Sequence record: NC_048182.1
Reading direction: 5' to 3' (one strand)
DNA: 64,000 nucleotides
The translations under genes were made by a program, and so were the position numbers. The notes beneath the pieces are model-generated. The model was not told where the DNA came from. It did not search any database and saw nothing but the letters and a program-made list of their open reading frames with translations. Shown here in pieces: positions 2 through 43,271 of the stretch. Position 1 is the first letter of the stretch. Each line of letters begins with the position of its first letter.

Positions 2-2812
2 AAAGCAGCACTAAAATCTCGTACTACTGAGTTGACCAAAGAGTATAACGCCAAACTCTTAGAGCGTAACGTTATTGAGATGATTCTCTATGGCGCTCAG
101 AACGGTAAAACCGCTTTGACTGATATTGAGATGGAACGTACCATTACTGCTGACTCAAAGTACAACGTACTGACGATGCAGTTCCAACCTCTTAAAGGTA
201 GCCGTTCCACTCGTCGTATGCGTATGCCAATCGTTGAAGAAGATGGTTCCTTTACCATCAACGGTGTTAAGTCCTATGCGCAGTTAATGCGTATGGAATT
301 ACCAATTCGTAAAATATCTCCAACTAAGGTTGCGTTGACTTCTTATTACGATAAGAAGATCATGGTCGAGCGTTCCATTAAACGCGCTGATGATTACCGT
401 AACTGGCTGAAGACATCTATCATAGCTCGTTCTTATGCTGACAAATCTATTAAGGTAAGTCTGGGTGGATTCAAACCACCTAAAGACAAAGTGTGCTATT
501 ACTATAGTGTTCTCGCCTCTCGTTTCAAATCCATCTCTACACCAGACTTCCATTTTGACTTTGACACTGCAGCATTAGTGACAACAAAAGAAGAAGCTAA
601 ACTGTGTAATGAGAACCAGTGGATTATTGGTCGTAAAGGGGATCATCCTATCTTTATCGACTCTACCGGCTTGGTTACCATTAATGGACAAGACGAAGGG
701 TACATTGAAGAACTGCTTGGTCTGAACGTTGCTAAAGCACCTTTACCTACCGCAACAGTAAATATCAACGGTTATCACTTCCCAGCGGTTGTTGTGTTAT
801 CTTACTGGATTGGGTTCACTAACCTGTTGAAAATGCTGAAGGTCGAATACCGCACAGTAGAACCAGATCAACGCGCTCAGTTAGGTGCTGATGAATATAT
901 GGTTGTCTTTGCTGACGAGCGCATGATTCTTAACCGTCGTGATGAACTGTCTACATTAATCATGACTGGGTTGCGTAAACTCGATAACCTTCAGAACTTC
1001 TCCCGTTCGCATTTAGATGATCCTAACATCTGGTTCGGTCTCATTGGTGACCCTCGCGTTAAACCGAGTCACTTCAAAGAGATGACGATGCTGTACGACA
1101 TGTTCATTGATCCAATTACTAAACGTCAGTTGGAACAGATGAAGTATCCGTACGTCCTGGATAAGCTGATCATTGAAGCTGTTAAACTCATGCTGAGCAA
1201 TGAGTCCAAACACGAGATCGAAATTACCGAGCAACGTTTCGTCGGTTACGAACGTTTTGCTGGTCACGTTTATCGTGAGCTTGTTAAAGCAACTCGTCAA
1301 TACCGTAACAAACCAAACAACGGTAAGAAAACCTTCGACCTTAACCCTGAAGCTGTAATGATGGCTATCGTAAGTGACTCTTCTGCTCAGGCAACTGAGG
1401 AAGTTAACCCGATTCACCAAATCAAGCAACAGGAAGAAGTTACCTTTGGTGGGACCTTGGGTCGTAGTGACCGTGCGATGGTTCGTCGTACTCGTGGACA
1501 GTTACCAAACTACGCAGGGATTATCTCTGAAGCTGGTAAGGACTCCGGTAAAGTAGGGTTCATCAGTTATCTGACTTCTGACGCTAAGATTGCTGACCTT
1601 TACGGTAACGTTGATGCGAACATGAAAGGCACGACTGTGGGTCGTGGTTCTGTTGTTATGAACACACTCTACGGCACAACCAAGGACGATACCAAACGTA
1701 CACTGTTCTCCGGCGTACAGCAAAGCCAGGTTATGGCTGCGGATAACTATGTCGTTAACCCACTACGTACTTCTTACGACTCTATCATTGCTTATCGTAC
1801 TTCTGAGTTGTACTCGTCTATCTCTAAGAAAGATGGGAAAGTAACTGAGGTAAGTGAGTATGGTATTACCGTAGAGTATGATGATGGGACAACGGATAAG
1901 TTCCCGCTGGGGTATGAGATTGGTAAAGGTGCGGGTGAATATCACAAACACCTGAAGATCACAGACCGCGATGTAGGATATGCGTTCAAGAAAGGTGAAA
2001 TCCTGGCTTGGGACTCAATGTTCTTTGACCGTGATATGATCGACCCAACTCGCGTTGTTTGGAAGTCTGGTGGTTTAGCACGTATTGCCTTTGGTGAAGA
2101 CCAGTTTACCTTTGAAGACTCCATCGGTATTGTTAAAGCGTTCTCTGATGCTTCGACAACTCCGTTCGTTAAACCTAACGATTTTAAAGTGGAAGCTCTC
2201 CAGGAAATCAAACTTCACGTTAAAGTGGGCGACGTGGTTGAATACGACCAGATCCTATGCGACATCCAGAACCCTGAGTCTGCTGCTTTCGAGGTAGATG
2301 ATTCTGGTATGTTTGATGGGTTGGACCGTTTAGGTATCAAGCAGATTAAAGCGAAGCAGTCAGGCAAGATCTCCAAAATCGAAGTTGTCTATAATGGCGA
2401 TATCGAAGACTGGAGTGATTCACTGAAAGCTTTCATTAAGAAGCAAGACGGTGTTCGAGCTAAATCAGCTAACTATAAGAAACTCACTGCGAAGACCGGT
2501 GACGTTGGTGGTAACACCTCCGTTGGTAAGAGCAAGGTTTACCCTGGCACTGCGGTTGTGTACATCTATATCGAGAACACAATCAAAACCACCACTGCGG
2601 ATAAATTCGTAGTAGGTAACCAGATGAAGGGTACAGTTGGTTTCATTTATGAACACCAGATCTATACCGTGGACGGTCGTCCTGTTGACATTACGTTCTC
2701 GCTTAAGTCACTGTTGAACCGAATGGTTCTGAGCTTACGCGATAAGGCAGTCGCTAACGAAGTCAACAACGTTTACACTCAGCGCATGATCGCTAAATAC
2801 GGGAAATACTAA
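2..2812 (+). CDS. Virion RNA polymerase beta-like subunit (phiKZ gp178 / SPN3US gp241 type), 5'-truncated by the window edge
   Basis: The frame is open from base 2. It has degenerate RpoB motifs (GKDSGKVG ~ TPEGPNIG; DKFVVGNQMKG ~ GDK..GRHGNKG; DGRPVDITFS...LNRM) and ends before the clamp region, as split jumbo-phage beta subunits do. Confidence 0.9.
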   Translation, partial: KAALKSRTTELTKEYNAKLLERNVIEMILYGAQNGKTALTDIEMERTITADSKYNVLTMQFQPLKGSRSTRRMRMPIVEEDGSFTINGVKSYAQLMRMELPIRKISPTKVALTSYYDKKIMVERSIKRADDYRNWLKTSIIARSYADKSIKVSLGGFKPPKDKVCYYYSVLASRFKSISTPDFHFDFDTAALVTTKEEAKLCNENQWIIGRKGDHPIFIDSTGLVTINGQDEGYIEELLGLNVAKAPLPTATVNINGYHFPAVVVLSYWIGFTNLLKMLKVEYRTVEPDQRAQLGADEYMVVFADERMILNRRDELSTLIMTGLRKLDNLQNFSRSHLDDPNIWFGLIGDPRVKPSHFKEMTMLYDMFIDPITKRQLEQMKYPYVLDKLIIEAVKLMLSNESKHEIEITEQRFVGYERFAGHVYRELVKATRQYRNKPNNGKKTFDLNPEAVMMAIVSDSSAQATEEVNPIHQIKQQEEVTFGGTLGRSDRAMVRRTRGQLPNYAGIISEAGKDSGKVGFISYLTSDAKIADLYGNVDANMKGTTVGRGSVVMNTLYGTTKDDTKRTLFSGVQQSQVMAADNYVVNPLRTSYDSIIAYRTSELYSSISKKDGKVTEVSEYGITVEYDDGTTDKFPLGYEIGKGAGEYHKHLKITDRDVGYAFKKGEILAWDSMFFDRDMIDPTRVVWKSGGLARIAFGEDQFTFEDSIGIVKAFSDASTTPFVKPNDFKVEALQEIKLHVKVGDVVEYDQILCDIQNPESAAFEVDDSGMFDGLDRLGIKQIKAKQSGKISKIEVVYNGDIEDWSDSLKAFIKKQDGVRAKSANYKKLTAKTGDVGGNTSVGKSKVYPGTAVVYIYIENTIKTTTADKFVVGNQMKGTVGFIYEHQIYTVDGRPVDITFSLKSLLNRMVLSLRDKAVANEVNNVYTQRMIAKYGKY

Positions 2813-3681
2813 TGTCAAACTCCAACACTGATGTATTCGCCATTAAGACGATGCAATCACTGTTGCGAGAAGTTAATCTCTATCGAGGCCGCATTGACGG
2901 CCTCTTTGGAGATGGCTGTCGCAATAGCGTTATCGCAATGCTGAAAAAGATCGATCCAGCATTTAATAAACAACTACCGGTTAACAGTTATGATGCAGCT
3001 TCTGTCTTCACCTTTATTCAGACTGGTCTGGCTGCTCTTGGTCTTTATACCCGTCGGATTGATGGTATTTGGGGCGATGGTACTTTTGGGGCTTTTAGCC
3101 AGTTGGTGGAAAACTATCGAGTATCCACCGGTAATCCACGATTCGGATTTGCGTGGTCTGGACATCCGGCAGTACCGAAAGAAGGTGTAGAGAAATATCT
3201 CACCTGGATGCGTAAATGGGGTAAACCTGATGAACACGTATCTTATATCTTGAGCTGCAATGCTCTGGAAACTGGCCGGACATTTGATCCAGCTATTCGC
3301 AATAAACTAAGTGGTGCAGTTGGCTTGATTCAGTTTATGCCTAAAGGGTCTGCTTTAGACCTGGGCACAACTGCTGACGCACTGGCTAAGATGAGTTTTG
3401 TTGAACAGCAGGATTATGTCTTCAAATACTTTGAAAAGTACGGCTACATCAAGAAGTGTCAGAGGCTGGAAGATTATTACCTTTCTATCTTCATGCCAGT
3501 AATGGTAGGTCGTGATCCAAATGAAGTTATTGGGCGTGCAGGTACTAAACTGTATGATCAAAACAAAGGCTTCGATGCGGACAAGAAAGGGTATTACACC
3601 GTCGGTGATATCGGCGCTGCAATTAACCAGTTCTACTGGGATGGGCTTGATCCGAAGAATCGTGTCATCATTACTCCATAA
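2812..3681 (+). CDS. Modular endolysin: two peptidoglycan-binding repeats plus a lysozyme-like/transglycosylase domain
   Basis: Repeats LYRGRIDGLFGDG and LYTRRIDGIWGDG, then ETGRTFDPAIRN..SGAVGLIQFMP (catalytic Glu plus GLIQ motif). Confidence 0.85.
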   Translation: MSNSNTDVFAIKTMQSLLREVNLYRGRIDGLFGDGCRNSVIAMLKKIDPAFNKQLPVNSYDAASVFTFIQTGLAALGLYTRRIDGIWGDGTFGAFSQLVENYRVSTGNPRFGFAWSGHPAVPKEGVEKYLTWMRKWGKPDEHVSYILSCNALETGRTFDPAIRNKLSGAVGLIQFMPKGSALDLGTTADALAKMSFVEQQDYVFKYFEKYGYIKKCQRLEDYYLSIFMPVMVGRDPNEVIGRAGTKLYDQNKGFDADKKGYYTVGDIGAAINQFYWDGLDPKNRVIITP

Positions 3682-32079: not shown

Positions 32080-33551
32080 TAGACCATACTCTCCATTGTC
32101 AAAGTTCGAAGGACAATATAAAGCATCAACGAAGTACGCAAAGACGTGATCTTAATATCCGTCTTGATACCCGTCATTGCTTTAACAATCTCGTCCCCAT
32201 TATTTCGGAGCTTCAGCAATAGAGCGTTAGAGGATTTACTTGAAGTATACGCACCACGAATTTTAAAGAAGATCTCTTTAATGTTGTTGTGTCGAATACT
32301 GTTGCTGTTGAGGTACTCAAACAAATGAGCAATTACGTCATCAACAAACTCACGATACTTCTCACCTTTAGCGTGAGCATACTGGATTGGGAAATCCCGG
32401 AGTATCATTTCAAGCTTATCCGCATCGGTTCTTGGAATCGCTGCAGCTGCATAAGTTGCTAACTCCTGTTTGAAAAAACTATTCTTATCATTCAGGACGC
32501 CACTGATGTAGTTGCGATAACGCGTTTCCTTTTTCTGAACATCTTTGATATTCAATTCACCGTCAAGTACGGCCAGACCGGAATCAGTTTCCACCAGGTC
32601 AACGGAATCCTTAATCTCATAGAGAACTTTGGTGTAGTCGTTGATTACACCTTTGAGACGGGATTCCATATCGTTCACCATGTAAACGATCTTCTTATCG
32701 TTATCCATCTTAGCAATAGTATCAAAGTGAATACCAGTACGAGGATCGATAATGAACTCAGCACGAGCACGGAAGAGATCATTCCATGAACCATAGCGCT
32801 TGATATCAAACTTCAGAGAGAGCTTGTTATACGCCGTTACAGCCACACTGTGTTTGACCAGGTAACCGTAATAGTGGTTCATGATAGAAGTCATGATACG
32901 ATAGTGGAAAAGCATGATGAGGTTAATCATCGCATCTTCTTTAAGGTTACGAGGGAGATCAGACACCCATACCTTATGAAGAAGATAAACGCAAGACAAG
33001 TTAAAGACTTCAGATGAAACTTTAAAGTCTTTGTTGATCCATTTGGTTTTGATCAACTCATCACGAAGACGTACTTCATCAACATCGATAATGTCACGGA
33101 AGAAAGTAACACGGTCAGACGTTTTAAAGAGAACACGGTGAGTACCGAGATATGGAGATCCAAAGAACTCTGTGTGGTCATTGTCTTTAGTAGCAAATCC
33201 ATAAACGTAACGTTTGAGGGTTTTTACCCAACGTTCGTTAATAATGAGATCATCGACTAAACCGTCAAAGATATCTTTAACCGCATCGTCACGGTTATAG
33301 TTAAAGTTTGGTTGTAGTGCTTCCATCCCAGCAACAAACTCTGGGGTGAGCATGTGTTCCATACCACCGAACTGATTCAGGGGAGTATATGGACCAAACA
33401 TGGTTACGGGGCTAAGAGGGTTGGCGGATTCTATCCCTGCCAACATCTCTTGCAATTCTGGATCGGCCATTGAGCGTTCATACAACTCTTCCGGCGTCAA
33501 GTCCACATAACGGTATTTAATAATACCGCTATAAAGATCGCGTTTATCCAC
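32079..33551 (-). CDS. Conserved jumbo-phage hypothetical protein
   Basis: 490 aa coupled to both neighbours; helical; contains KFDIKRYGSW. Confidence 0.7.
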   Translation of the reverse strand: MDKRDLYSGIIKYRYVDLTPEELYERSMADPELQEMLAGIESANPLSPVTMFGPYTPLNQFGGMEHMLTPEFVAGMEALQPNFNYNRDDAVKDIFDGLVDDLIINERWVKTLKRYVYGFATKDNDHTEFFGSPYLGTHRVLFKTSDRVTFFRDIIDVDEVRLRDELIKTKWINKDFKVSSEVFNLSCVYLLHKVWVSDLPRNLKEDAMINLIMLFHYRIMTSIMNHYYGYLVKHSVAVTAYNKLSLKFDIKRYGSWNDLFRARAEFIIDPRTGIHFDTIAKMDNDKKIVYMVNDMESRLKGVINDYTKVLYEIKDSVDLVETDSGLAVLDGELNIKDVQKKETRYRNYISGVLNDKNSFFKQELATYAAAAIPRTDADKLEMILRDFPIQYAHAKGEKYREFVDDVIAHLFEYLNSNSIRHNNIKEIFFKIRGAYTSSKSSNALLLKLRNNGDEIVKAMTGIKTDIKITSLRTSLMLYIVLRTLTMESMV

Positions 33552-34396
33552 TACCGTTTCCTTGGAACCATCATTTTGAGAGAATCGGCTTTACCTTTCG
33601 GATCTGAATAAGCAAAGATCTTTTTCATCTCATTATAATACATATCTTTGAAAGACTGCCCTGCATCTGAGTAACCCTGTATTTCATCCTGGATGTCTTC
33701 AACAGTTACGCCAAAACGAGACACAGCTTCTTGCATCCCACGGCGACAGTGTTTGTAGATATACGCTTTGGTACCCCATTCCACCCACTCAGCAAACTTG
33801 TCATGAGATTTTGGATGAAGGGTAGTAAAGTGATCATCAAAAGCCAATACGACTTTAGCGATCATATTAAACAATGCAGAACCTGCATCGCGGATAATAA
33901 AGGAGTTATTACCCGTCATGGTAATGTTGGTAAAGGTACGCTGAACGTTACCATCATCAAGACCGTTGATCAGACGACTTAATGCGTTGTTCATTTGACC
34001 TGTACCGCAGGTAGCATAACCGGCAAAATTATTGCCGTTCATAATAGCCCGGTTGATATTTCCAGGATAGACTTCGATAACCTGCATGATACGACGACCA
34101 CCGGTTAAGAAGTCTGGTACGTTAACGGCAATTACACCGCCTGCAAGATTTTCAATTCGAGCATAACTCAAATCGACAACCTCGGTAGTACCGCCAGCGA
34201 CGTCCATTAAAGGCGCACACATCTTCATGATGACCTTTTCACGAATCCCCTGATCGATACTAAATTCAGTATTCACGGGTTGCCAAACTGATCCATAGCC
34301 GTTGTTGGGATTCTCAAAAGCGAGCTTCAACATGTACGGCGATATATCAGATGGACCATCCTGAATATAGTTGATGGCAAAATCTATAGCGCTCAT
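33551..34396 (-). CDS. Conserved jumbo-phage hypothetical protein (possibly virion)
   Basis: 281 aa in the same operon as tmk. Confidence 0.7.
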   Translation of the reverse strand: MSAIDFAINYIQDGPSDISPYMLKLAFENPNNGYGSVWQPVNTEFSIDQGIREKVIMKMCAPLMDVAGGTTEVVDLSYARIENLAGGVIAVNVPDFLTGGRRIMQVIEVYPGNINRAIMNGNNFAGYATCGTGQMNNALSRLINGLDDGNVQRTFTNITMTGNNSFIIRDAGSALFNMIAKVVLAFDDHFTTLHPKSHDKFAEWVEWGTKAYIYKHCRRGMQEAVSRFGVTVEDIQDEIQGYSDAGQSFKDMYYNEMKKIFAYSDPKGKADSLKMMVPRKR

Positions 34397-34439
34397 TTAT
34401 AATACCCTTGCAAGGAAGTTACAAAACATTCAGCATAAA

Positions 34440-34471
34440 CCCCCTACCCCGCCCGAAGGTGAGGTAGGGGG
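34440..34471 (-). terminator. Terminator-like hairpin just 3' of the hammerhead
   Basis: Minus strand CCCCTACCTC-ACC-TTCG-GGC-GGGGTAGGGG; the U tract is weak. Confidence 0.6.
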
Positions 34472-34480
34472 AGTACGATC

Positions 34481-34580
34481 TTGCATCCGACGGTTCCTAA
34501 AGGTCTGGAATCCTTTATATCTGGAACCCGTTTCGTCCACTTGTTTTACATCGCCGGACTCGTCAGGGTTTGCGATGCTA
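34481..34580 (-). ncRNA. Hammerhead ribozyme (type I topology)
   Basis: Minus strand: CUGACGA (34566-34560), stem II GUCC/GGAC, GAAA (34534-34531), stem III ACGG(G)UUCC/GGAACCGU and GUC (34491-34489). Stem I is CC/GG plus GCAU/AUGC around a bulge. Confidence 0.85.
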
Positions 34581-35160
34581 CTCCACATGTAGTAGGGTGA
34601 GCTACCCGATATCGTGCTGGTACCCTGGAAGGGACCTATTAGTCAAGATGAACGTCAAAGTTCAAGACTGTATCGCAACTGTCGTTCGGGTAACTCAAGA
34701 GGTGCAGTAAGGCGTAAAGTAATCCGACGTGACATGCCTGTCTCGGTTTCTCTAGCTTACTGCAGAATGGGTGCAACGTTCCCAACTCTGATAGATGTTT
34801 CTTTTTATAACCGCCCTGGAAGGTGTTCGGGTTCTACCTTCATAGATAAGACGAGCATCACCTCGCCATTGCATTCAGCTTATGCTACAGGACATTCTAT
34901 CAGCGCGTCGCTGCGTCGCCGAGGCTAACCAGGGCAACACCCACCAGAGGCTACTTACAGTAGCGGACTTATAAGCCGCCGTTCACCGTCTGGATTTTCC
35001 TGAGTAGTAGCGTACTCAGGTTTTGCCTTCTCCAGCACTCGGGGAGGTGAGACCCCAAACCAGAGAAGGTCTTACAACCAATCTCAGTCGACTGGCAGAC
35101 CCCTGTTATTAGCCCGCATGGCATATAACCCAGATCTACACTTCCCGACACATCGGTTGT
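34481..35160 (-). ncRNA. Large structured non-coding RNA (about 680 nt), family unknown
   Basis: No credible ORF. At least six nested 8-11 bp helices, whose non-Watson-Crick positions are mostly G-U on the minus strand. Confidence 0.75.
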
Positions 35161-35432
35161 TATGCTGTTGCCATTTCCGGAGCATTGTCCGGATTAGCCA
35201 GCGTTTTCACCAAACCTTCGTAACCGCCTTTAATAAAGACGTCATCAACGAAGATCTGAGGAACAGTACGAACCACTTCACCGCAGATCTCAGACAGCTT
35301 TTCGCCATTGATACCTGCTTCAACGATGTTGATGTACTCAATTTCCAGACCTTTTTCTTCGGCCAGGGCTTTAGCACGATCACACCATGGGCAATTTGGT
35401 TTGCCATAGATCTTAACAACTTTGGTTTCCAT
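35160..35432 (-). CDS. grx: Glutaredoxin
   Basis: CPWC active site, TVPQIF and GGYE motifs. Confidence 0.95.
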   Translation of the reverse strand: METKVVKIYGKPNCPWCDRAKALAEEKGLEIEYINIVEAGINGEKLSEICGEVVRTVPQIFVDDVFIKGGYEGLVKTLANPDNAPEMATA

Positions 35433-35440
35433 TATAGTTC

Positions 35441-35566
35441 CTAACCAATAGTAATGTGAATAAAACTGAACAGCCAGATCAGACCTTCAATGGTGGCCCA
35501 GCCAGCTATTGCGCAGATCAGACCGAAAATTACGATCATTCCTGTCCAGGATCCGGAGAACCACAT
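35441..35566 (-). CDS. 41-aa membrane peptide
   Basis: MWFSGSWTGMIVIFGLICAIAGWATIEGLIWLFSFIHITIG with an AAGGTG RBS. Confidence 0.6.
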   Translation of the reverse strand: MWFSGSWTGMIVIFGLICAIAGWATIEGLIWLFSFIHITIG

Positions 35567-35886
35567 AGGTCACCTTTTGAAGTTGTAGAGGATCTCGAGA
35601 GTTGAACTCAACTTATCATTCAGTACAGTTGAAGTAGAGTTGTCTATCTTCACCGCTAATGGGTTCACGACTAAGTCGCTAGAGCATAACTGAACTTGTG
35701 TCCCACGACACGACCCTCATTGATTAGGCTCGAGGTCAGGACTTTAACCTAACTACTGCGACGTCTTCAATGACATCCTCGAAGTTGGAATTACACACCG
35801 AGCAACCGATAGGTGGGAAGTGGATCCCAGGTATGCACTTTAGGCCCTGGCCTGTTGTACCCCGGTTGTACTCGATATGTAATATT

Positions 35887-35972
35887 TGGTGGTAGAGGAA
35901 GGATTTGAACCTACGAAGCCCGAAGGCAACAGATTTACAGTCTGCTCTCGTTGACCGCTTGAGTACTCTACC
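35887..35972 (-). tRNA. trnY: tRNA-Tyr (GUA)
   Basis: Acceptor stem GGTAGAG/CTCTACC plus A-CCA, anticodon loop CTGTAAA, long variable arm and GTTCAAATC T-loop. Confidence 0.97.
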
Positions 35973-36120
35973 TTAATACTTTACTTTCCCTTCAGTGCTT
36001 TCTCTAAAGGGCTTGAAACTTTCTTAGCGAACACATTGTTAGGTTGTTTCTTGTAAATCGCCTGGTTAACTAGAGTTTTAGTTAATTGGGGATTGAGATG
36101 AGGAAACCCACTTGGTGTTC

Positions 36121-36630
36121 TCATTTGGCAGGTCCGGTATGTTGATTACCAGTACCGCTGTGGATGTTCACATGAGGGGAATTAATCTTAAAGTTACCGC
36201 CTACCATATGAACCGTCCCGGCATTCACATCAACGGTAACATCTTTCTTACCATTGATTACTGAAACTGTTACACCAGTCTCGCTGATGATATACGCTTC
36301 CACATCAGAAGTAATATATTCAATGCGAGTCTCTGGATCATCGACGTAGCGTTTGTGAATTAACACAGCTACACAGTTATGCGGAAGATTCAAATCTCCG
36401 GCAAACTCGCCAATCTGTTTTGTTTCCGGACAGACTCGATACAGATCCCAGATATCCCATATATACTTAACTGATTCATGGCTTAATACTGGGAGAACCC
36501 CTTTACCGTTCAACCATTCTTCTCTGATTTTATTAACCGCATCAACGGTTTCATCTGCAGATAAGAAAGTAGCATTCAGATCTAAAGTCGACGGGATTTG
36601 ATTTGGGGTACGAATGGTTTTCAATAACAT
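36121..36630 (-). CDS. Hypothetical protein
   Basis: 169 aa with a GAG RBS. Confidence 0.65.
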   Translation of the reverse strand: MLLKTIRTPNQIPSTLDLNATFLSADETVDAVNKIREEWLNGKGVLPVLSHESVKYIWDIWDLYRVCPETKQIGEFAGDLNLPHNCVAVLIHKRYVDDPETRIEYITSDVEAYIISETGVTVSVINGKKDVTVDVNAGTVHMVGGNFKINSPHVNIHSGTGNQHTGPAK

Positions 36631-36659
36631 GCTTTATCTCACTTAGTTTTGTTAGTAGG

Positions 36660-37060
36660 AGGTTTAGCTGTTTGTGAATAACCCGCTTTTCATTTAAGGA
36701 AGCGCTGATCCCGAAGGAGGGCTGCGGGTTACTATTGTGAGCCGCTATTGCTAAGCTCAGTTCTATCACAGTCGTAACAGAACAAGGTGCCGAACTTAAT
36801 CGGTTGCTTTGCGACTATCTTCATCAATTTAACCTTAAGAGACACCGTGGTCAGTTTAAGGCAGAAGAGGGAGTCTATCCAAATTGTTAATGGCTTATAT
36901 TATCCATGATCGCCACTTCATGGAAAATCCCTTATATACCTAGGCAACCATTAGGTTGATTTGGATTCCAAGGGGAGGTACCTCGGGTAGCTCTGTAGTC
37001 GAGCAGTCGATCCATGGCAAAATTTACTTTGACTACAGAGCTTTGTTCTTAACAGAATAT
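36660..37060 (-). ncRNA. Candidate structured RNA or long leader
   Basis: 12-bp stem at 36989-37000/37031-37042, 8-bp stem at 36679-36731, a UCC-UUCG-GGA tetraloop on the minus strand and further hairpins. Confidence 0.45.
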
Positions 37061-37078
37061 AGTAATCAGCTTAAATTA

Positions 37079-37369
37079 TTAAGCTGGGATGTATTCCACC
37101 CAATCATGACCCATCTGATCGCTAACCGAAGGAACCCAGGTATTTACCGTACCGGTGACCGTGTTAACAATAACGAAGAAAGGTTCGATGTATGGCTGTA
37201 CGCCATTTGGGAGTTCTACATCAGTGGCACGGACAGAACCATGTAACTGGACATAAAGTCCTTTACCATTCCAACCAGTACGCTGGTATTTCTTATGAGC
37301 CGGTCCAACAATCGCTGGAAGAGCTGACGCCCAGGTTACTGGAGCTGGAGCTGCCGATTCTTGATTCAT
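37079..37369 (-). CDS. DUF2829 / Tad2-like anti-defence sponge protein
   Basis: KYQRTGWNGKGLYVQL ... TWVPSVSDQMGHDWV matches the R.GWNGKG / W.PS..D....DW family signature. GGGA RBS before the ATG at 37369. Confidence 0.8.
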   Translation of the reverse strand: MNQESAAPAPVTWASALPAIVGPAHKKYQRTGWNGKGLYVQLHGSVRATDVELPNGVQPYIEPFFVIVNTVTGTVNTWVPSVSDQMGHDWVEYIPA

Positions 37370-37549
37370 TTGGTATTCCCTGGTGAGCTTAAAAAGAACC
37401 CCCATAGCCTGCACGACCCATAGGGGTTAAAAGCGATACCAGCAAGGCATACGCTTTTTCTGCTTACTCAAATTACGAATAAACACAAAAAGAGTAGGGT
37501 GTTTGACACACCCTCGCTCTGAATACGGATATGAAGGAAGCTTAAAACC

Positions 37550-37872
37550 TTCTTAAAGGGAACTCATGATAAGACCCTTTAAGAAAGCGAGAGCACCGTG
37601 GGATTGACTCGGCACTCTCTACTTTAAGCATCGGAGGAGAATAATGGACGAAAGTACTGGCTTAGCGGAGCGGATTACTTTCTTAATAACAACTCATTCT
37701 CATTGAGTAACTATTAAGAAAGGGGATGTGGCAAGCATCCCGCTTTATTAACGAGGAGTATAGCAATGGCAATAGCACTACGAAGCAACCGGGCGAATCG
37801 GACACACTTCTGTAAGAGAACTCATTAAAGACGCTTAAAGAAGTGGAGATACTATTTTTACATAATATCTCC
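37550..37872. repeat. Three degenerate double-hairpin modules of about 129 bp sharing AACTCAT
   Basis: AACTCAT at 37561, 37691 and 37819, each inside a TTCT...AGAA stem and followed by a second purine-led hairpin. Confidence 0.6.
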
Positions 37873-38004
37873 TAACCCTGTAAAAATAAAATCATTCAAA
37901 GGGAATGATAGAAAGCAATGAGCAATGTGTAAACATGAAAGTCGTCGAGAGCAAGTTCGATTTATTTCACATAATATATAACAATTCCATTTTTATTTAA
38001 GTAG

Positions 38005-38024
38005 ATATTATCTACATGTTAAAC
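38005..38024 (+). promoter_or_regulatory. Putative early promoter starting the large accessory block
   Basis: ATATTATCTACATGTTAAAC. Confidence 0.7.
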
Positions 38025-38063
38025 AATTACAATATTTTAAGTATAACATAGAGGATTACGATT

Positions 38064-38678
38064 ATGAACGTAGAAACTATTCGCAAAAGTCTGTCTGCTC
38101 AGTTGCGCAACCATTTTCCAGTTGTTAATGAAGTTCGTGTAAGTGTAGTATCGCCATTGGATCTTACCGGTCCTCAATTAAAAAGCGAAATCATCTACGC
38201 TTTCGAATTCATTATCAATAACAGCGAACGGTATCACACCTTTGCTGTTGAACGTGATCACGATGTTTATTTCACCCGTCCTAAAGAAGGGATCCGTTCT
38301 GAACTGACCACAATGATCCGTACTCGCGACTTCCGTCTGTTACTGACCGAAGACATTCTCAATCACCAAGATGTGGTAGGGAAGTTCCTGGAAAACAAAC
38401 TGTGCCAGGGTGCTCGTGAAGATATCGAACGCATTGTGAAGGACATTACTCAGATTGGGGAAGATCTGGGTAAACCGAATGTTCATATTTGTCAAGGCTT
38501 TACTGTAAAACGTTTCCATAAAGTCACTATGGGTTATGACTCTGCCATTGAATTATTAGTAAGGCACAGCGATCAAACTGAATATGCACGCTATACCGGT
38601 AAAGTGGAGAGCGGGCGTTTAATGGCGTTAAAAGACTCAATGGGTAACAATGCATCTACCCACGCACTCTTCGATTAA
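38064..38678 (+). CDS. Hypothetical protein
   Basis: 204 aa with a GAGGA RBS. Confidence 0.8.
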   Translation: MNVETIRKSLSAQLRNHFPVVNEVRVSVVSPLDLTGPQLKSEIIYAFEFIINNSERYHTFAVERDHDVYFTRPKEGIRSELTTMIRTRDFRLLLTEDILNHQDVVGKFLENKLCQGAREDIERIVKDITQIGEDLGKPNVHICQGFTVKRFHKVTMGYDSAIELLVRHSDQTEYARYTGKVESGRLMALKDSMGNNASTHALFD

Positions 38679-38715
38679 TTTAAAAAACCCAATATCTTTA
38701 AAAAGGAACAGAATA

Positions 38716-39186
38716 ATGGCTAGCAAAAAACCCGCTAAACAAAAGAAAGTTAAAACTAACTTGAACAAACCAGCTCCACGCCCTGTGGTTCATCTGGACT
38801 ATCTGCGGGTATACCATGAAGTCTTGAAGCACGAAGAAGTGCTTGATTATGATCTGGATGTGATCTTTGATGCTACCATTAAAGTTCTCGAAGCAAATTT
38901 GGCTGATAAGAAACTCTCACAACAGCCGGATGGTTATGATGTAGAAGTTCTGGTAAGTCTGGTAATGGAAGAGCTGGTTGATAAAACCGTATCTTTGGAA
39001 GATGTTGCCATGGAGCTGGAACGGGAGCTTGGCTTACCAGGTACCGCTCAAGAAGCTTTGAAAGCAATCACAGGTGACTTTGATTCAGCTTTCCCTGGCA
39101 AAGGTAGCCTCACCGAGACATTGAAAAAATCTCGGAGTAATGTTCGTAACTTCCCTGAACATCAAGCGTTTAACCACGCCGTATAA
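38716..39186 (+). CDS. Hypothetical protein with a basic N-terminus
   Basis: AAGGA RBS before MASKKPAKQKK. Confidence 0.75.
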   Translation: MASKKPAKQKKVKTNLNKPAPRPVVHLDYLRVYHEVLKHEEVLDYDLDVIFDATIKVLEANLADKKLSQQPDGYDVEVLVSLVMEELVDKTVSLEDVAMELERELGLPGTAQEALKAITGDFDSAFPGKGSLTETLKKSRSNVRNFPEHQAFNHAV

Positions 39187-39253
39187 ACCCATCACCTCCA
39201 GCCCTCACGGGTTGGGGGTGTTTTAATAATACATTTAACTTAGAGAAAATAAA

Positions 39254-40048
39254 ATGATTACTTCTACTTCCATGACTGTATCGTTGTTAGCTGGACTGAT
39301 GAAATGGATCGCTACTGGTGAAGATGGCGGTGCTCGTTCTACATTGGGTGCTGAGCTGGAGTTCACTCATGTTACCAGTTACGAGATTGACGGCCAGCCT
39401 CGCAAGATCATTCTTGTATTTAAGCGCGGCGCGATGCTCGGTCGAGTTATTCCTGTTTACGAAGAAAATAGCGAAAAGCTTACCCGTTGGTTGATTCAAC
39501 GCGATACCCAGTTGGGTTTCTTCATGGACGAAACAAATGGTACTTACGAGTACATGGCTGACTATGCGGTTAACATGTTCTTGGTAGATCCAGATGTTCT
39601 GAAACGGGTATTTGAGGAACGTAATCAAAACCGTATCAACGGGCTGACTGTAACCAAGCCAAAAGAAAATACCCCATCTAAACACCTAATTTATGAAGTT
39701 GAAATGAAAGACTTCGATGAGGTTATGTGCGCGGACATGGGTAAAGATAAAGCTGAACTGGGTAAGGTTCTCGGAATTTACAAGGTGACAGACATCGAGT
39801 ACCTAAAGGACATTCACTTCGAATGTTTCGTCGCCGGTAATGAATACGAGAACTGGGTTCAGTGCATGGTTATGCAAAGCTCAGGTAAATTCCCTCGTAT
39901 CTACGGTAGCTTCCGTATGAACGACACCTATGCGGTTATTGAAAGTCGCTTCTTCAAAGGGGCGGTCGAAACTGTATTCGATTTTGGGCTGGCTGATGTT
40001 ATTAATCGTTTCATGGTAATCCCTCATGCAAATCACAGTGCAAAGTAA
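39254..40048 (+). CDS. Hypothetical protein
   Basis: 264 aa ORF. Confidence 0.75.
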   Translation: MITSTSMTVSLLAGLMKWIATGEDGGARSTLGAELEFTHVTSYEIDGQPRKIILVFKRGAMLGRVIPVYEENSEKLTRWLIQRDTQLGFFMDETNGTYEYMADYAVNMFLVDPDVLKRVFEERNQNRINGLTVTKPKENTPSKHLIYEVEMKDFDEVMCADMGKDKAELGKVLGIYKVTDIEYLKDIHFECFVAGNEYENWVQCMVMQSSGKFPRIYGSFRMNDTYAVIESRFFKGAVETVFDFGLADVINRFMVIPHANHSAK

Positions 40049-40463
40049 AGCGAAGCTAATCAAGCTTTGTGAAGATCTCCGCCGGATCAAAAAGAAAATT
40101 CCGATTGATCCAAGAAGAATGTCACCGACTCCAAAGCAGCTCAAACGAGCTATGGAAGACATTCGTGAAAAGCTAAGGGAATCTCAAGGCATTAAGTTTG
40201 ATCTTGATGACGGGGGTTCTAAGTTCTTTGATGTGGGGTATGTGGCGGGTGGTCGTGAACACCATGTCGTCCCCATCATGGAAATCTTTTCTGTTGAACC
40301 TACACGAGCTGATAGTCGTTTATTAATGACTGTTTGGTTTGATGTAGAATGTCATGCTCATGTCACTACGTTAGATGGACGATATAAGACAGTATTCCGT
40401 TACGCGACTCCTGAAGAGTTGTCTAATTGGATTGCTGAATATCTTGTTGAGTTTTATTCCTAG
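40026..40463 (+). CDS. Hypothetical protein
   Basis: 145 aa ORF. Confidence 0.7.
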   Translation: MQITVQSKAKLIKLCEDLRRIKKKIPIDPRRMSPTPKQLKRAMEDIREKLRESQGIKFDLDDGGSKFFDVGYVAGGREHHVVPIMEIFSVEPTRADSRLLMTVWFDVECHAHVTTLDGRYKTVFRYATPEELSNWIAEYLVEFYS

Positions 40464-40593
40464 TTATATTAATTTCTGACTCCTATTCTTATCTATTGTT
40501 TAGGGGTAGGGGTCTATCCGATTAGGATGAATTAATATAATTACTGAACGAAGTGAAGTATCCTTATTCCATCTGTTAATACCGAAGGTAAAC

Positions 40594-40968
40594 ATGAATC
40601 CTTACATAGCAAGTATTCCAATGATACTTCTTATTGTTTTAATCGTTTCCCATACTACTTGGAAAATGATTAAACGCAGAAGAGAAATTGATAAACTCTC
40701 TAAAGAAACCATTCAGGGTATTCGACTGAGTCTAGTAAGCTATCTCAATAAAGAATTTGCCAGCACAGGTGAAATCAATGAGGTAAAACTTTATACCAAA
40801 TGCAGAGATATTCAAGACATGTATACAGGGATTGTAATCACCACTCTGATGCCTAAAGAGTTTCTCACTATCGATATTGTATATGGCAAACACAAAAGCA
40901 CCATAACGTGTCACCGCAGAGTTCCCAAATGGCACAGGGAAAACAATACCAAATATGAGGTGGTCTAA
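40594..40968 (+). CDS. N-terminally membrane-anchored hypothetical protein
   Basis: TM segment IASIPMILLIVLIVS. Confidence 0.7.
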   Translation: MNPYIASIPMILLIVLIVSHTTWKMIKRRREIDKLSKETIQGIRLSLVSYLNKEFASTGEINEVKLYTKCRDIQDMYTGIVITTLMPKEFLTIDIVYGKHKSTITCHRRVPKWHRENNTKYEVV

Positions 40969-41318
40969 TGGACAACTATGTCGTGGTGTCTTTAGGTACA
41001 GTATGTCTTGTTCTACTGTGCATCGTTTCTTTCTTGTTGAAGAGAGAACACAAATCTTCGGAAGCAGTTAAGCGTGTAGTCAGCGATGTGAAATATAACC
41101 TAGATCGGGAAATGAAGAAATATCTTGACAATGGTGAAAAGATAACATCGCTGTATTTAATCAGCGCTGCTTTCAGTTGCTCTCGCCATCTTCCTTCATC
41201 AGTCCATATTGATTATGGTATCGATAACGATGAATGGTTCTTTGTTATCCTGCTGGGTAACGAATGTGAAATGGTCTCTGGCCCAATTATGATTGATAAG
41301 GCAAAAGAAAATGATTGA
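40968..41318 (+). CDS. N-terminally membrane-anchored hypothetical protein
   Basis: TM segment YVVVSLGTVCLVLLCIVSFLL. Confidence 0.7.
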   Translation: MDNYVVVSLGTVCLVLLCIVSFLLKREHKSSEAVKRVVSDVKYNLDREMKKYLDNGEKITSLYLISAAFSCSRHLPSSVHIDYGIDNDEWFFVILLGNECEMVSGPIMIDKAKEND

Positions 41319-41664
41319 TAACAACACGCTGTACGGGATTGTCGGAACTCTGCTGTTCACCAATTTCGTGATTCCATTCCTGAAGGCACTGTTTGGACCA
41401 TCTCCAGCTCCAAAGATCCAGCTGAGTAGTTTGACAACATTACCTCGAATGAATGCGGCAGATTTGGCTTATGTCATTGGTCAGATCATCCATGAAAATG
41501 ATGGTAAATATTGGCTGGTTGATTATTCGACCGATGAAGCCAATGTTGTTACTATTACTTTTGGATATAAACAACAGGGCGAGGACTATAAATTTGAAGT
41601 CATGTGTCGTATTGATAACACGATGGCTCCAAAGTACCCGCTCAACAAACGTCGTAAAAAGTAA
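41311..41664 (+). CDS. N-terminally membrane-anchored hypothetical protein
   Basis: TM segment LYGIVGTLLFTNFVIPFL. Confidence 0.7.
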   Translation: MIDNNTLYGIVGTLLFTNFVIPFLKALFGPSPAPKIQLSSLTTLPRMNAADLAYVIGQIIHENDGKYWLVDYSTDEANVVTITFGYKQQGEDYKFEVMCRIDNTMAPKYPLNKRRKK

Positions 41665-41741
41665 CAATACTCTGTTTAATTCAATAGTTCCGTAAGGGAC
41701 TATCTTAAACCACCATAAATCTATAATTGGGAAAAATGTAA

Positions 41742-42401
41742 ATGTTCACTGCTACTCACGCAACCGCTCTGGTAATCCGTTTAATCCTGACCTACATTGC
41801 CGCTAACGTTAAAATCGTTAACGAGCTGCTGTCGCAGGTTGAAGTTGGTCAAAGCCTGACTCTGTTCCAACGTGGTAAACTGATTATCACTATGAGCCGT
41901 GCCGGTGGGAAAGGAGTCCTTCAGTTTGAATTCGGGGATCGTGAGTTCCATGAGATCAAACTGAACTCGGCAAAAACGCCTATCAGTAAACGTGTTCTGA
42001 ATGATCTTGAAGTTTGGTATCATCGTGAATTCCGTCCTTTAGAAATTGAAGCGCGGGAATGTGCTGAAATTGCTTTGGGTCAGATTCATTTAGAACGTGA
42101 ACTGAGAAAGTTCACCTTTATGGATAAACTGCTGGGTCGTGGTCGTACCGTAGATCTGAATACCGGATTTGCTATGTTTGACAGATTGATCGAAAACAAA
42201 GCAACCATCCAGCCAAATCTGTTTGGTAAGACTAAAGTTCTGATCCAATCCGAAGTGAGCTTAGGCAATCATGCAGCACCTCTGCGCCGTATTCTTCCGG
42301 TACAGTTCGGTGCTAGTCAGGAGTTCACTGTTTCTAATGGTGATCCTGTTGATGCGTACGCTCGCAGTGTGATTAAGTCCGTTCTTGATTTGCTGAAATA
42401 A
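41742..42401 (+). CDS. Hypothetical protein
   Basis: 219 aa ORF. Confidence 0.75.
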   Translation: MFTATHATALVIRLILTYIAANVKIVNELLSQVEVGQSLTLFQRGKLIITMSRAGGKGVLQFEFGDREFHEIKLNSAKTPISKRVLNDLEVWYHREFRPLEIEARECAEIALGQIHLERELRKFTFMDKLLGRGRTVDLNTGFAMFDRLIENKATIQPNLFGKTKVLIQSEVSLGNHAAPLRRILPVQFGASQEFTVSNGDPVDAYARSVIKSVLDLLK

Positions 42402-42719
42402 AACTGAATGGGTGGCCTTAGGGTCATCCACTCTTTGTTTGTTTTATAATTTTAAGTTATTTTTAAGGTAGTTATTATTATATGCAGTTCTCTTAACTTT
42501 TATCTTTCTCTTACTTCCTTTTTATAGGGTAGTAAGGGGGGATAAAAGGGGGGATTGTCCTTTCCGGGCGGGAGGCCAATCCAGCTATATCTAATAGGGG
42601 TTTTGTTATATTAGATATAATAGAGTAAAGAACAAAGGTTACCTGGAAATTAAAAATTCCCAAAAATTCAATTAAACTCTGATTATCCTACGGGGTAATC
42701 GGGGGTAAAGGAGATATGT

Positions 42720-43271
42720 ATGAAACTTGAGTATTTCGGTATTACCACTAAAGAGAACACCACTTGCTATGATACCGTAGCAGCTCATATCGCTAAAACA
42801 TTTTATCACGTTAAGTTGAATGGAGACAAAGCTATTGCTAATGACTTCATTGCTGAGATGCGTGTACAATGGCATGCTGATGGTATTGAAGGTGACATTC
42901 GTGTAATGTCTCACGATGTTGCTTCACTGATGGAATGGTTGAAAGATAACCATCCAGAAGTTCATGTACTGGTTCCTCCATTCCGTATCGATGTATTCCA
43001 AGAACTGGCTAATCAGATGAAGTCTTCTTCTCATCTGACTTATCAAGCTGTAGCGCCGGATCAGGAAATGGAATATGAATTTGGCGTTGAGCCAGATACT
43101 GATGATTTTGTACCAGAGCGTGCATCGGTAGAAGAATCTCTGGAAGCTATTAAAGCCAATGGCTTCTATACTGGCTTGCAGTGCTATCCAAATACCCCGG
43201 TTGGATTCTGGTCCTTTTATGGATTAGATTTCGAATCTCTGTTTAACCAAATTCTTGAAGAGGAAGAGTAA
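42720..43271 (+). CDS. Acidic hypothetical protein
   Basis: AAGGAG RBS; 183 aa. Confidence 0.8.
   Translation: MKLEYFGITTKENTTCYDTVAAHIAKTFYHVKLNGDKAIANDFIAEMRVQWHADGIEGDIRVMSHDVASLMEWLKDNHPEVHVLVPPFRIDVFQELANQMKSSSHLTYQAVAPDQEMEYEFGVEPDTDDFVPERASVEESLEAIKANGFYTGLQCYPNTPVGFWSFYGLDFESLFNQILEEEE

Follow-up and report, generated by a model that had tools for sequence, protein, structure and literature searches.

The 64-kb window analysed here, that is, the whole stretch of DNA under study, covers bases 212735-276734, the right end of the 276,734-bp linear genome of Edwardsiella phage pEt-SU (NC_048182 / MK689364). On its minus strand, at 37079-37369, lies a Tad2-like coding sequence of 96 codons plus stop (P0001; gp283), documented by its translation, by Pfam, by GenBank and by dN/dS analysis. 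These coordinates coincide with the GenBank CDS HOV39_gp283, for which the deposited product is 'DUF2829 domain containing protein'. Both motifs quoted in the original prediction for this DNA are present in the translated frame, at residues 30-42 (RTGWNGKGLYVQL) and 78-90 (WVPSVSDQMGHDW), and residues 11-22 read VTWASALPAIVG. The Tad2/DUF2829 identification offered there is correct, yet it already stands in the public annotation and in the name of the Pfam family. The G+C content of gp283 (48% versus 43% for the genome) is unremarkable. As judged from the alignment, the right start codon is the ATG at 37369, because the alternative, a longer GTG-started frame reaching to 37414, crosses a conserved hairpin with its 15 extra codons and, in Pantoea phage Survivor, is not in phase with the ATG of Tad2; the longer frame was therefore rejected as the gene.

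Orthologues of this Tad2 gene are found in Pantoea phage Survivor, Erwinia phage AH04, Kosakonia phage Kc263, Klebsiella phage N1M2 and four uncultured jumbo-phage contigs, and more distant matches to gp283 occur in Pseudomonas phage OBP, Shewanella phage SXP01 and Serratia phages. The gene order was constant at all nine loci inspected: a gene of about 205 codons on the opposite strand, 600-800 gene-free nucleotides, Tad2, an orphan gene, one or more tRNA genes, a glutaredoxin gene and a gene for a virion protein (DUF7484). The Tad2 frame is intact in each of the nine phages. For gp283, dN/dS was 0.12 relative to the orthologue with 78% identity and ranged over 0.12-0.41 for the eight orthologues; across all Tad2 pairs it reached 0.42, values to be read with saturated synonymous sites (dS 1.3 to over 3). 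On these comparisons, the gene is maintained under purifying selection and vertically inherited in the lineage, with no recent pick-up. In Klebsiella phage N1M2, the orthologue at the same locus is N1M2_258 (L015:1929-2168; 79 aa), which is annotated as 'methionine--tRNA ligase', an annotation that looks wrong.

Ten genes around Tad2, namely gp284 at 36121-36630 on the minus strand and gp282-gp274 at 38064-43271 on the plus strand, matched neither Pfam nor PHROG; together they make up an orphan-gene block that is kept in related phages. An 'anti-defence island' around Tad2 was considered and is unsupported, as none of these ten neighbours gave such a match. A search of the pEt-SU genome for a NAPRTase, an NAD-salvage counter-defence, also found none. 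Downstream, about 450 gene-free nucleotides separate the Tad2 stop from gp284 (36631-37078, minus strand), and no minus-strand terminator was found there.

The leader upstream of gp283

Between the divergent gp282 and Tad2 lies a gene-free leader of 694 nt (37370-38063, minus strand) that is conserved and rich in hairpins. Its nucleotide identity to four relatives is 78-88%, while their Tad2 proteins are only 58-78% identical to gp283, and it is far better conserved than are synonymous positions in the genes on either side, those of Tad2 being saturated. Folding of the leader alignment predicted 168 pairs, and compensatory changes occurred at 18 of these. An Rfam scan of 33000-39000 returned a tRNA-Tyr only, leaving the leader without a match, and a hammerhead stayed below the gathering score. 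Near-identical copies of pEt-SU DNA from 36000-39000 were observed in silage, insect and sediment metagenomes. None of the runs containing this DNA is registered as RNA, and four runs labelled RNA-Seq that were compared with it are probably DNA. Two libraries labelled as metagenomic RNA-Seq had identical pieces only at the non-coding stretches 37670-37962 and 36633-36884 and none on Tad2, which is too little to claim expression.

A G+C-rich hairpin followed by a U run, resembling a terminator, occupies 37391-37428 (minus strand) and ends about 20 nt before the start codon; compensatory pairs fall within it in the alignment fold. Such a hairpin with a U run stands 15-45 nt before the Tad2 start in all nine phages folded, even where the sequence is unrelated (equivalents in L005, L006, L007, L008, L009, L010, L011 and L015). 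A Shine-Dalgarno-like AGGGA follows at 37377-37381 (minus strand), 7 nt before the ATG, and the orthologues carry similar purine-rich boxes before their Tad2 starts. At the far end of the leader, conservation marks an AT-rich, promoter-like box, TATATTATGTGAAATAA, at 37962-37978 (minus strand). It is largely kept in eight phages, with invariant columns scattered through their alignment, and the five closest relatives differ from it by one or two substitutions at most. The box resembles the TATATTAy boxes upstream of the gene for chimallin, the shell protein of the phage nucleus, and of other genes.

Boxes reading TATATTA(C/T) and then AGTGTA... were seen at genome positions 1286, 72829, 173384, 176166 and 180175 and at window position 37978, and one TATATTA(C/T) copy, among repeats, lies directly upstream of the chimallin gene. 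This repeated box is a candidate phage promoter motif. A sigma-70 promoter scan gave nothing above the shuffled expectation, and its model suits a phage that encodes its own polymerases poorly in any case.

The presence of a pre-start hairpin in nine of nine phages suggests either control by read-through or a separate upstream RNA. The likeliest arrangement, in our view, is that a structured leader or separate RNA ends at the terminator and that Tad2 is translated from read-through transcripts; several 5' UTRs of phiKZ are arranged in the same way (PMC10914365). Compared with Tad2 itself, this leader, which is conserved, structured and closed by a terminator-like hairpin ahead of the start codon, is the more unusual feature of the locus.

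Family membership, fold and ligand pocket

Membership of the Tad2/DUF2829 family, as originally predicted, is borne out by profile HMM, by fold and by the residues of the ligand pocket. In the Pfam search that had been proposed as a check, gp283 scored 53 bits against PF11195 'Tad2-like' (E 5.2e-14; profile positions 12-72 of 73), for which the curated gathering cut-off is 25 bits, and it was the sole PF11195 match in the pEt-SU genome. All matches of gp283 among PDB sequences were Tad2 proteins: by phmmer, the E-values were 3e-8 for ModTad2, 4e-6 for SPO1 Tad2 and 3e-4 for SptTad2, and the match of HgmTad2/AcrIIA7 to this single sequence was weak (0.0025-0.015). An alignment of 14 homologues (A1) served as input for a profile, for the AlphaFold2 model and for the calls of invariance. 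This profile gave E-values of 6e-17 for ModTad2, 1e-13 for SPO1 Tad2, 2e-13 for SptTad2 and 7e-11 for HgmTad2/AcrIIA7, the clade profile scoring 64.7 bits with ModTad2 (MoTad2) versus 53.8 bits with SPO1 Tad2. An NCBIfam scan of gp283 returned no match.

The AlphaFold2 model of gp283 (pLDDT 88.7) contains helices at residues 13-21 and 82-86 and strands at 28-30, 38-43, 64-69, 74-77 and 90-92. The elements follow the Tad2 order of an N-terminal helix, an antiparallel beta sheet and a short C-terminal helix before the last strand. When the model was compared with the PDB by Foldseek, all 23 matches at E<=1e-3 were Tad2 chains (TM about 0.6-0.8), and the next match had an E-value of 0.3. Sequence and predicted structure alike show that gp283 truly belongs to the Tad2 family; the match did not arise by chance.

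The Tad2 pocket is built from the loop beta1-beta2, strand beta4 with the flanking loops beta3-beta4 and beta4-alpha3, and helix alpha3 (10.1101/2023.05.01.538930; 10.1101/2023.11.15.567273). In SPO1 Tad2, W25, N26, W73 and D79 of both protomers hold 1''-3' gcADPR, T78, I63 and T65 contact the adenine, and waters are bound on D67, H71 and S76 (10.1101/2023.05.01.538930). In HgmTad2, the gcADPR pocket comprises W21, N22, G23, W87, L88, S90, T92 and D93, and binding is lost in the W21A/N22A and S90A/T92A/D93A mutants (10.1101/2023.11.15.567273). HMMER aligns SPO1 W25, N26, W73, D79 and T78 with W33, N34, W78, D84 and S83 of gp283, and SPO1 I63, T65, S76, D67 and H71 with V68, T70, S81, T72 and N76. 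Across these ten ligand and water positions, gp283 is identical at six, conservatively substituted at two and changed at two, both water-coordinating (T72 for D67 and N76 for H71). HgmTad2 W21, N22, G23, W87, S90, T92 and D93 correspondingly align with W33, N34, G35, W78, S81, S83 and D84, and V79 of gp283 also falls at a pocket position in the alignment with solved Tad2 proteins. The mutant sites that abolish gcADPR binding in HgmTad2 are thus W33/N34 and S81/S83/D84 of gp283, and ModTad2, too, has Ser in place of Thr at the position of S83.

On the DNA, the first half of the pocket is encoded by the R30-T-G-W33-N34 codons of the loop beta1-beta2 at 37268-37282 (minus strand), identified by alignment to SPO1 W25/N26 and HgmTad2 W21/N22/G23; in solved Tad2 structures, the Trp and Asn of this loop stack on the signal and hold the phosphates of ADP-ribose. 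The second half, running from beta4 into alpha3, is encoded by the W78-V-P-S81-V-S83-D84 codons at 37118-37138 (minus strand), aligned to SPO1 W73/S76/T78/D79 and HgmTad2 W87/S90/T92/D93. All 14 homologues share R30, G32, W33, G35-G37, W78-S81 and D84. With only two water ligands changed and these residues invariant, the working part of Tad2, as established for its solved members, is by this alignment intact in gp283. Separately, the orthologues in Kc263 (L009), L010 and L011 read GWAGKG instead of GWNGKG, and the Asn by which solved Tad2 structures bind the diphosphate is gone; in these three, binding may be changed or weakened.

By analogy with the solved proteins and from its conserved pocket residues, we consider it probable, at about 0.7, that gp283 is a cytoplasmic tetrameric sponge for a TIR-made ADP-ribose signal of Thoeris. 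As in solved Tad2 structures, four copies of gp283 would form two dimers that interlock along helix alpha1, and two pockets would form between protomers of different dimers. In each, W33/N34 of the loop beta1-beta2 and W78/S81/S83/D84 from beta4 to alpha3 would enclose the TIR-made signal, which would be kept from the Thoeris effector so that abortion of the infected cell would be averted. Its place of action would be the cytoplasm, the compartment in which the signal is produced and the phage nucleus would offer no protection. Candidate signals are 3'cADPR (type I), His-ADPR (type II) and N7-cADPR (type IV), or several of them. Transcription would start from a promoter at the far end of the 694-nt leader and read through the terminator-like hairpin before the ribosome-binding site. 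Counted against this reading, on the sequence, are P18 and the longer linker in the tetramer-locking alpha1, QMGH in alpha3, and T72 and N76.

Choice of ligand and alternative readings

The original prediction described the N-terminal helix as divergent, and this stands in the alignment of 14 homologues. The helix alpha1 codons for residues 13-21 (WASALPAIV) lie at 37307-37333 (minus strand) and belong to an AlphaFold2 helix with a block pLDDT of 96. The pEt-SU N-terminus reads WASALPAIVGPAHKK where relatives and solved proteins read F/Y..(A/V)L..LK.GKK; helix alpha1 contains a proline (P18), and its link to strand beta1 is longer by two residues. The divergent helix is a derived state confined to pEt-SU and its closest relatives (P0002-P0004), a sub-clade that consists of pEt-SU, a metagenomic twin (95% identical) and two further relatives. 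The canonical helix is kept in the more distant orthologues of Kosakonia phage Kc263 and Klebsiella phage N1M2, and that of Erwinia phage AH04 is different and longer. In pEt-SU, the helix preserves its hydrophobic register, with W13, A16, L17 and I20 in place of F, A, L and L.

The further step of that prediction, from a divergent helix to a different ligand specificity, is unsupported, because alpha1 makes the tetramer and the pocket is built from other elements: in solved Tad2 proteins, alpha1 interlocks two dimers into the tetramer and is absent from the listed pocket elements (10.1101/2023.05.01.538930; 10.1101/2023.11.15.567273). If specificity does differ, T72, N76 and helix alpha3, which borders the pocket and reads QMGH versus the family consensus LLAE, would be more relevant than alpha1, and we assign a low probability to an altered specificity arising for such other reasons. 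A bolder idea, unlikely in our estimation, is that the sub-clade remodelled two tetramer surfaces together (the proline and longer linker of alpha1 and the QMGH of alpha3) and kept H43/N76 at the mouth of a second pocket, which could point to an altered oligomer or to an altered or additional ligand, such as an undescribed Enterobacterales TIR signal, and that, separately, the leader hairpin could gate the sponge by read-through.

Membership of the family does not fix the ligand, because its members differ in function. Among them are inhibitors of CBASS, Pycsar and Thoeris I, II and IV; ModTad2 binds His-ADPR (type II Thoeris) and, at a second site, cUMP, Tad2_71 blocks Thoeris types I, II and IV, and HgmTad2 and SptTad2 additionally bind cyclic dinucleotides. 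Type I Thoeris was blocked by four of five tested Tad2 homologues, the fifth blocking type II, and 65 of 84 tested sponge homologues were active. Conservation of the motifs cannot pick the ligand either, since WNG and W.PS.[ST]D are common to all Tad2 proteins.

SPO1 Tad2 (gp34.65; PDB 8SME/8SMF/8SMG, 8WJE), a type I Thoeris sponge for 1''-3' gcADPR, shares with gp283 the Pfam family, the fold (Foldseek E 1e-5, TM 0.65-0.75), a similar size (89 versus 96 aa in gp283), a short beta2-beta5 insert (24 versus about 20 aa) and the pocket residues W, N, W, S, T/S and D, but the identity is just 24-26%. Unlike SPO1 Tad2, gp283 has a proline in alpha1 with a linker two residues longer, a disordered N-terminal extension of 10 residues, no predicted helix alpha2 in the insert, T72 and N76 for D67 and H71, and QMGH versus VLAE in alpha3. 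The best-scoring solved relative is ModTad2/MoTad2 from a Myroides odoratus prophage (PDB 8V3E, 9EIB), which acts as a sponge of both the type II Thoeris signal His-ADPR and the Pycsar signal cUMP; it leads SPO1 Tad2 by a small margin (phmmer 3e-8; 64.7 bits; 27-30% identity), and its WNGKG and W.PSVSD motifs are letter-identical to those of gp283. The better score amounts to a weak lean towards the ModTad2-like clade of type II Thoeris, to which TmoTad2 and CcaTad2 are also counted. HgmTad2 (AcrIIA7) and SptTad2 (PDB 8KBI-8KBM, 8WJC, 8WJD) are two-pocket sponges for gcADPR and cyclic dinucleotides, which have the core fold and the gcADPR pocket residues in common with gp283; their insertion domain of 35-41 aa forms the cyclic-dinucleotide pocket, whereas gp283 has about half of it.

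This length bears on the hint in the original prediction at CBASS cyclic dinucleotides. The subtype that binds them comprises HgmTad2, SptTad2 and SaTad2. Such binding requires an insert of 35-41 aa between beta2 and beta5, the insert being 41 residues in HgmTad2 and 24 in SPO1 Tad2 (10.1101/2023.11.15.567273). In the AlphaFold2 model of gp283, it is about 20 aa, between the strands at 38-43 and 64-69, and in the N1M2 orthologue it is cut to about seven residues. The hint at CBASS signals is thus not upheld, and binding of cyclic dinucleotides in the manner of HgmTad2 is unlikely for gp283 because the modelled insert is short. HgmTad2 R31 and N85 contact the guanine of c-di-GMP (10.1101/2023.11.15.567273). 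They align with H43 and N76 of gp283, while HgmTad2 S47 and F70 fall in the missing part of the insert; by their position, H43 and N76 keep a small door open for a second site.

A sponge whose main ligand is not a Thoeris signal would exploit such a site: cUMP or cCMP (Pycsar, as in MoTad2), a cyclic dinucleotide (CBASS, as in HgmTad2) or an undescribed signal would be bound in a second, intra-dimer pocket. The breadth of Tad2 inhibition, which spans CBASS, Pycsar and three Thoeris types, agrees with this possibility, as do MoTad2, the closest solved relative by score, whose insert measures only some 24 aa and whose cUMP site lies at the interface within the dimer, and the invariant or nearly invariant state of H43 and N76 in the clade. 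However, the insert is about 20 aa versus 35-41 aa in the cyclic-dinucleotide binders, HgmTad2 S47 and F70 have no counterpart in gp283, and N76 is also the counterpart of SPO1 H71, which coordinates water in the gcADPR pocket. Full retention of the canonical ADP-ribose pocket would be difficult to account for if nothing were bound there, and we regard a main non-Thoeris ligand as quite improbable.

Less probable again is a DUF2829 protein with a role outside defence, for example, in nucleotide or metabolite binding tied to an operon rich in RNA (structured RNAs, tRNA, glutaredoxin). In the nine phages, the gene is always flanked by non-coding regions that are structured and conserved and by tRNA genes, its neighbouring proteins are all orphans, and PHROG profiles (172-262 positions) show DUF2829 also as the C-terminal part of longer phage proteins; but all DUF2829 proteins of demonstrated activity are immune-signal sponges, and the invariant residues are exactly those that hold the ADP-ribose signal.

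Two last readings carry hardly any weight. An AcrIIA7-type anti-CRISPR function could be read from AcrIIA7 being a DUF2829 protein and from the matches to it (E 0.0025-0.015 in the PDB search and 7e-11 to 3e-10 with the profile, at positions 8-40 only), yet these are limited to the shared N-terminal third, Cas9 inhibition by HgmTad2 or its homologues was not reproducible for Li et al., and the nucleus would already shield the phage from DNA-targeting CRISPR. A decaying or non-functional remnant, to which the unusual N-terminus and helix alpha3 and the Ala at the phosphate-binding Asn in some orthologues (GWAGKG in Kc263, L010 and L011) might point, is contradicted by frames intact in nine of nine phages, by dN/dS of 0.12-0.41 with saturated synonymous sites, by invariant pocket motifs and by a confidently predicted fold.

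Thoeris signals and the predicted phage nucleus

The preferred reading, a sponge for the Thoeris signal, gains its context from the rest of the genome. At genome positions 1374-3284, pEt-SU encodes a protein of 636 aa for which phrog_4795 'nuclear shell protein' was matched with an E-value of 2.5e-126. The identity of this chimallin came from the PHROG profile: a direct search of pEt-SU with phiKZ chimallin gave no match, nor did a phmmer search of the PDB with the candidate open reading frame. The gene stands directly upstream of a homologue of phiKZ gp55, an RNA polymerase subunit, and pEt-SU encodes homologues of the phiKZ RNA polymerase subunits gp55, gp71/73 and gp74, plus gp70. With chimallin and phiKZ-type split RNA polymerases both encoded, the phage fits the Chimalliviridae. 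Because chimallin is encoded, pEt-SU should build a phage nucleus, and the logic of the original prediction, by which a sponge would fill a gap left by the nucleus, applies here.

That nucleus-forming phages need protection from signalling defences has already been argued for phiKZ Tad1 (PMC13282480), and the same point has been made for chimallin phages in general (PMC12625630). The logic is the same for phiKZ Tad1 and gp283, a chimallivirus facing signalling defences that the nucleus cannot block (PMC13282480); unlike gp283, however, phiKZ Tad1 belongs to an unrelated protein family, forms a hexamer and is reportedly injected with the virion, and nothing suggests virion injection for gp283. 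In the literature, we found no paper testing a Tad2 from a nucleus-forming phage and none linking Edwardsiella and Thoeris.

Nucleus-forming jumbo phages are candidates for phage therapy, since their shell blocks DNA-targeting defences, yet abortive-infection signalling reaches them. According to a 2026 review (PMC13282480), phiKZ Tad1 is the sole anti-defence protein so far described for jumbo phages. At least nine jumbo phages (enterobacterial, Pseudomonas-type and uncultured) carry Tad2, and, if the reading of gp283 is true, Tad2 at a fixed locus would be a second, independent sponge family in jumbo phages. If, in addition, the leader hairpin gates the sponge by read-through, an RNA operon would here contain an anti-defence gene subject to regulation. 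With 96 residues encoded by a single gene, gp283 is a simple test object: if it binds no Thoeris signal, the invariant pocket would demand another ligand, and if it binds one, this would predict which host defences limit these phages.
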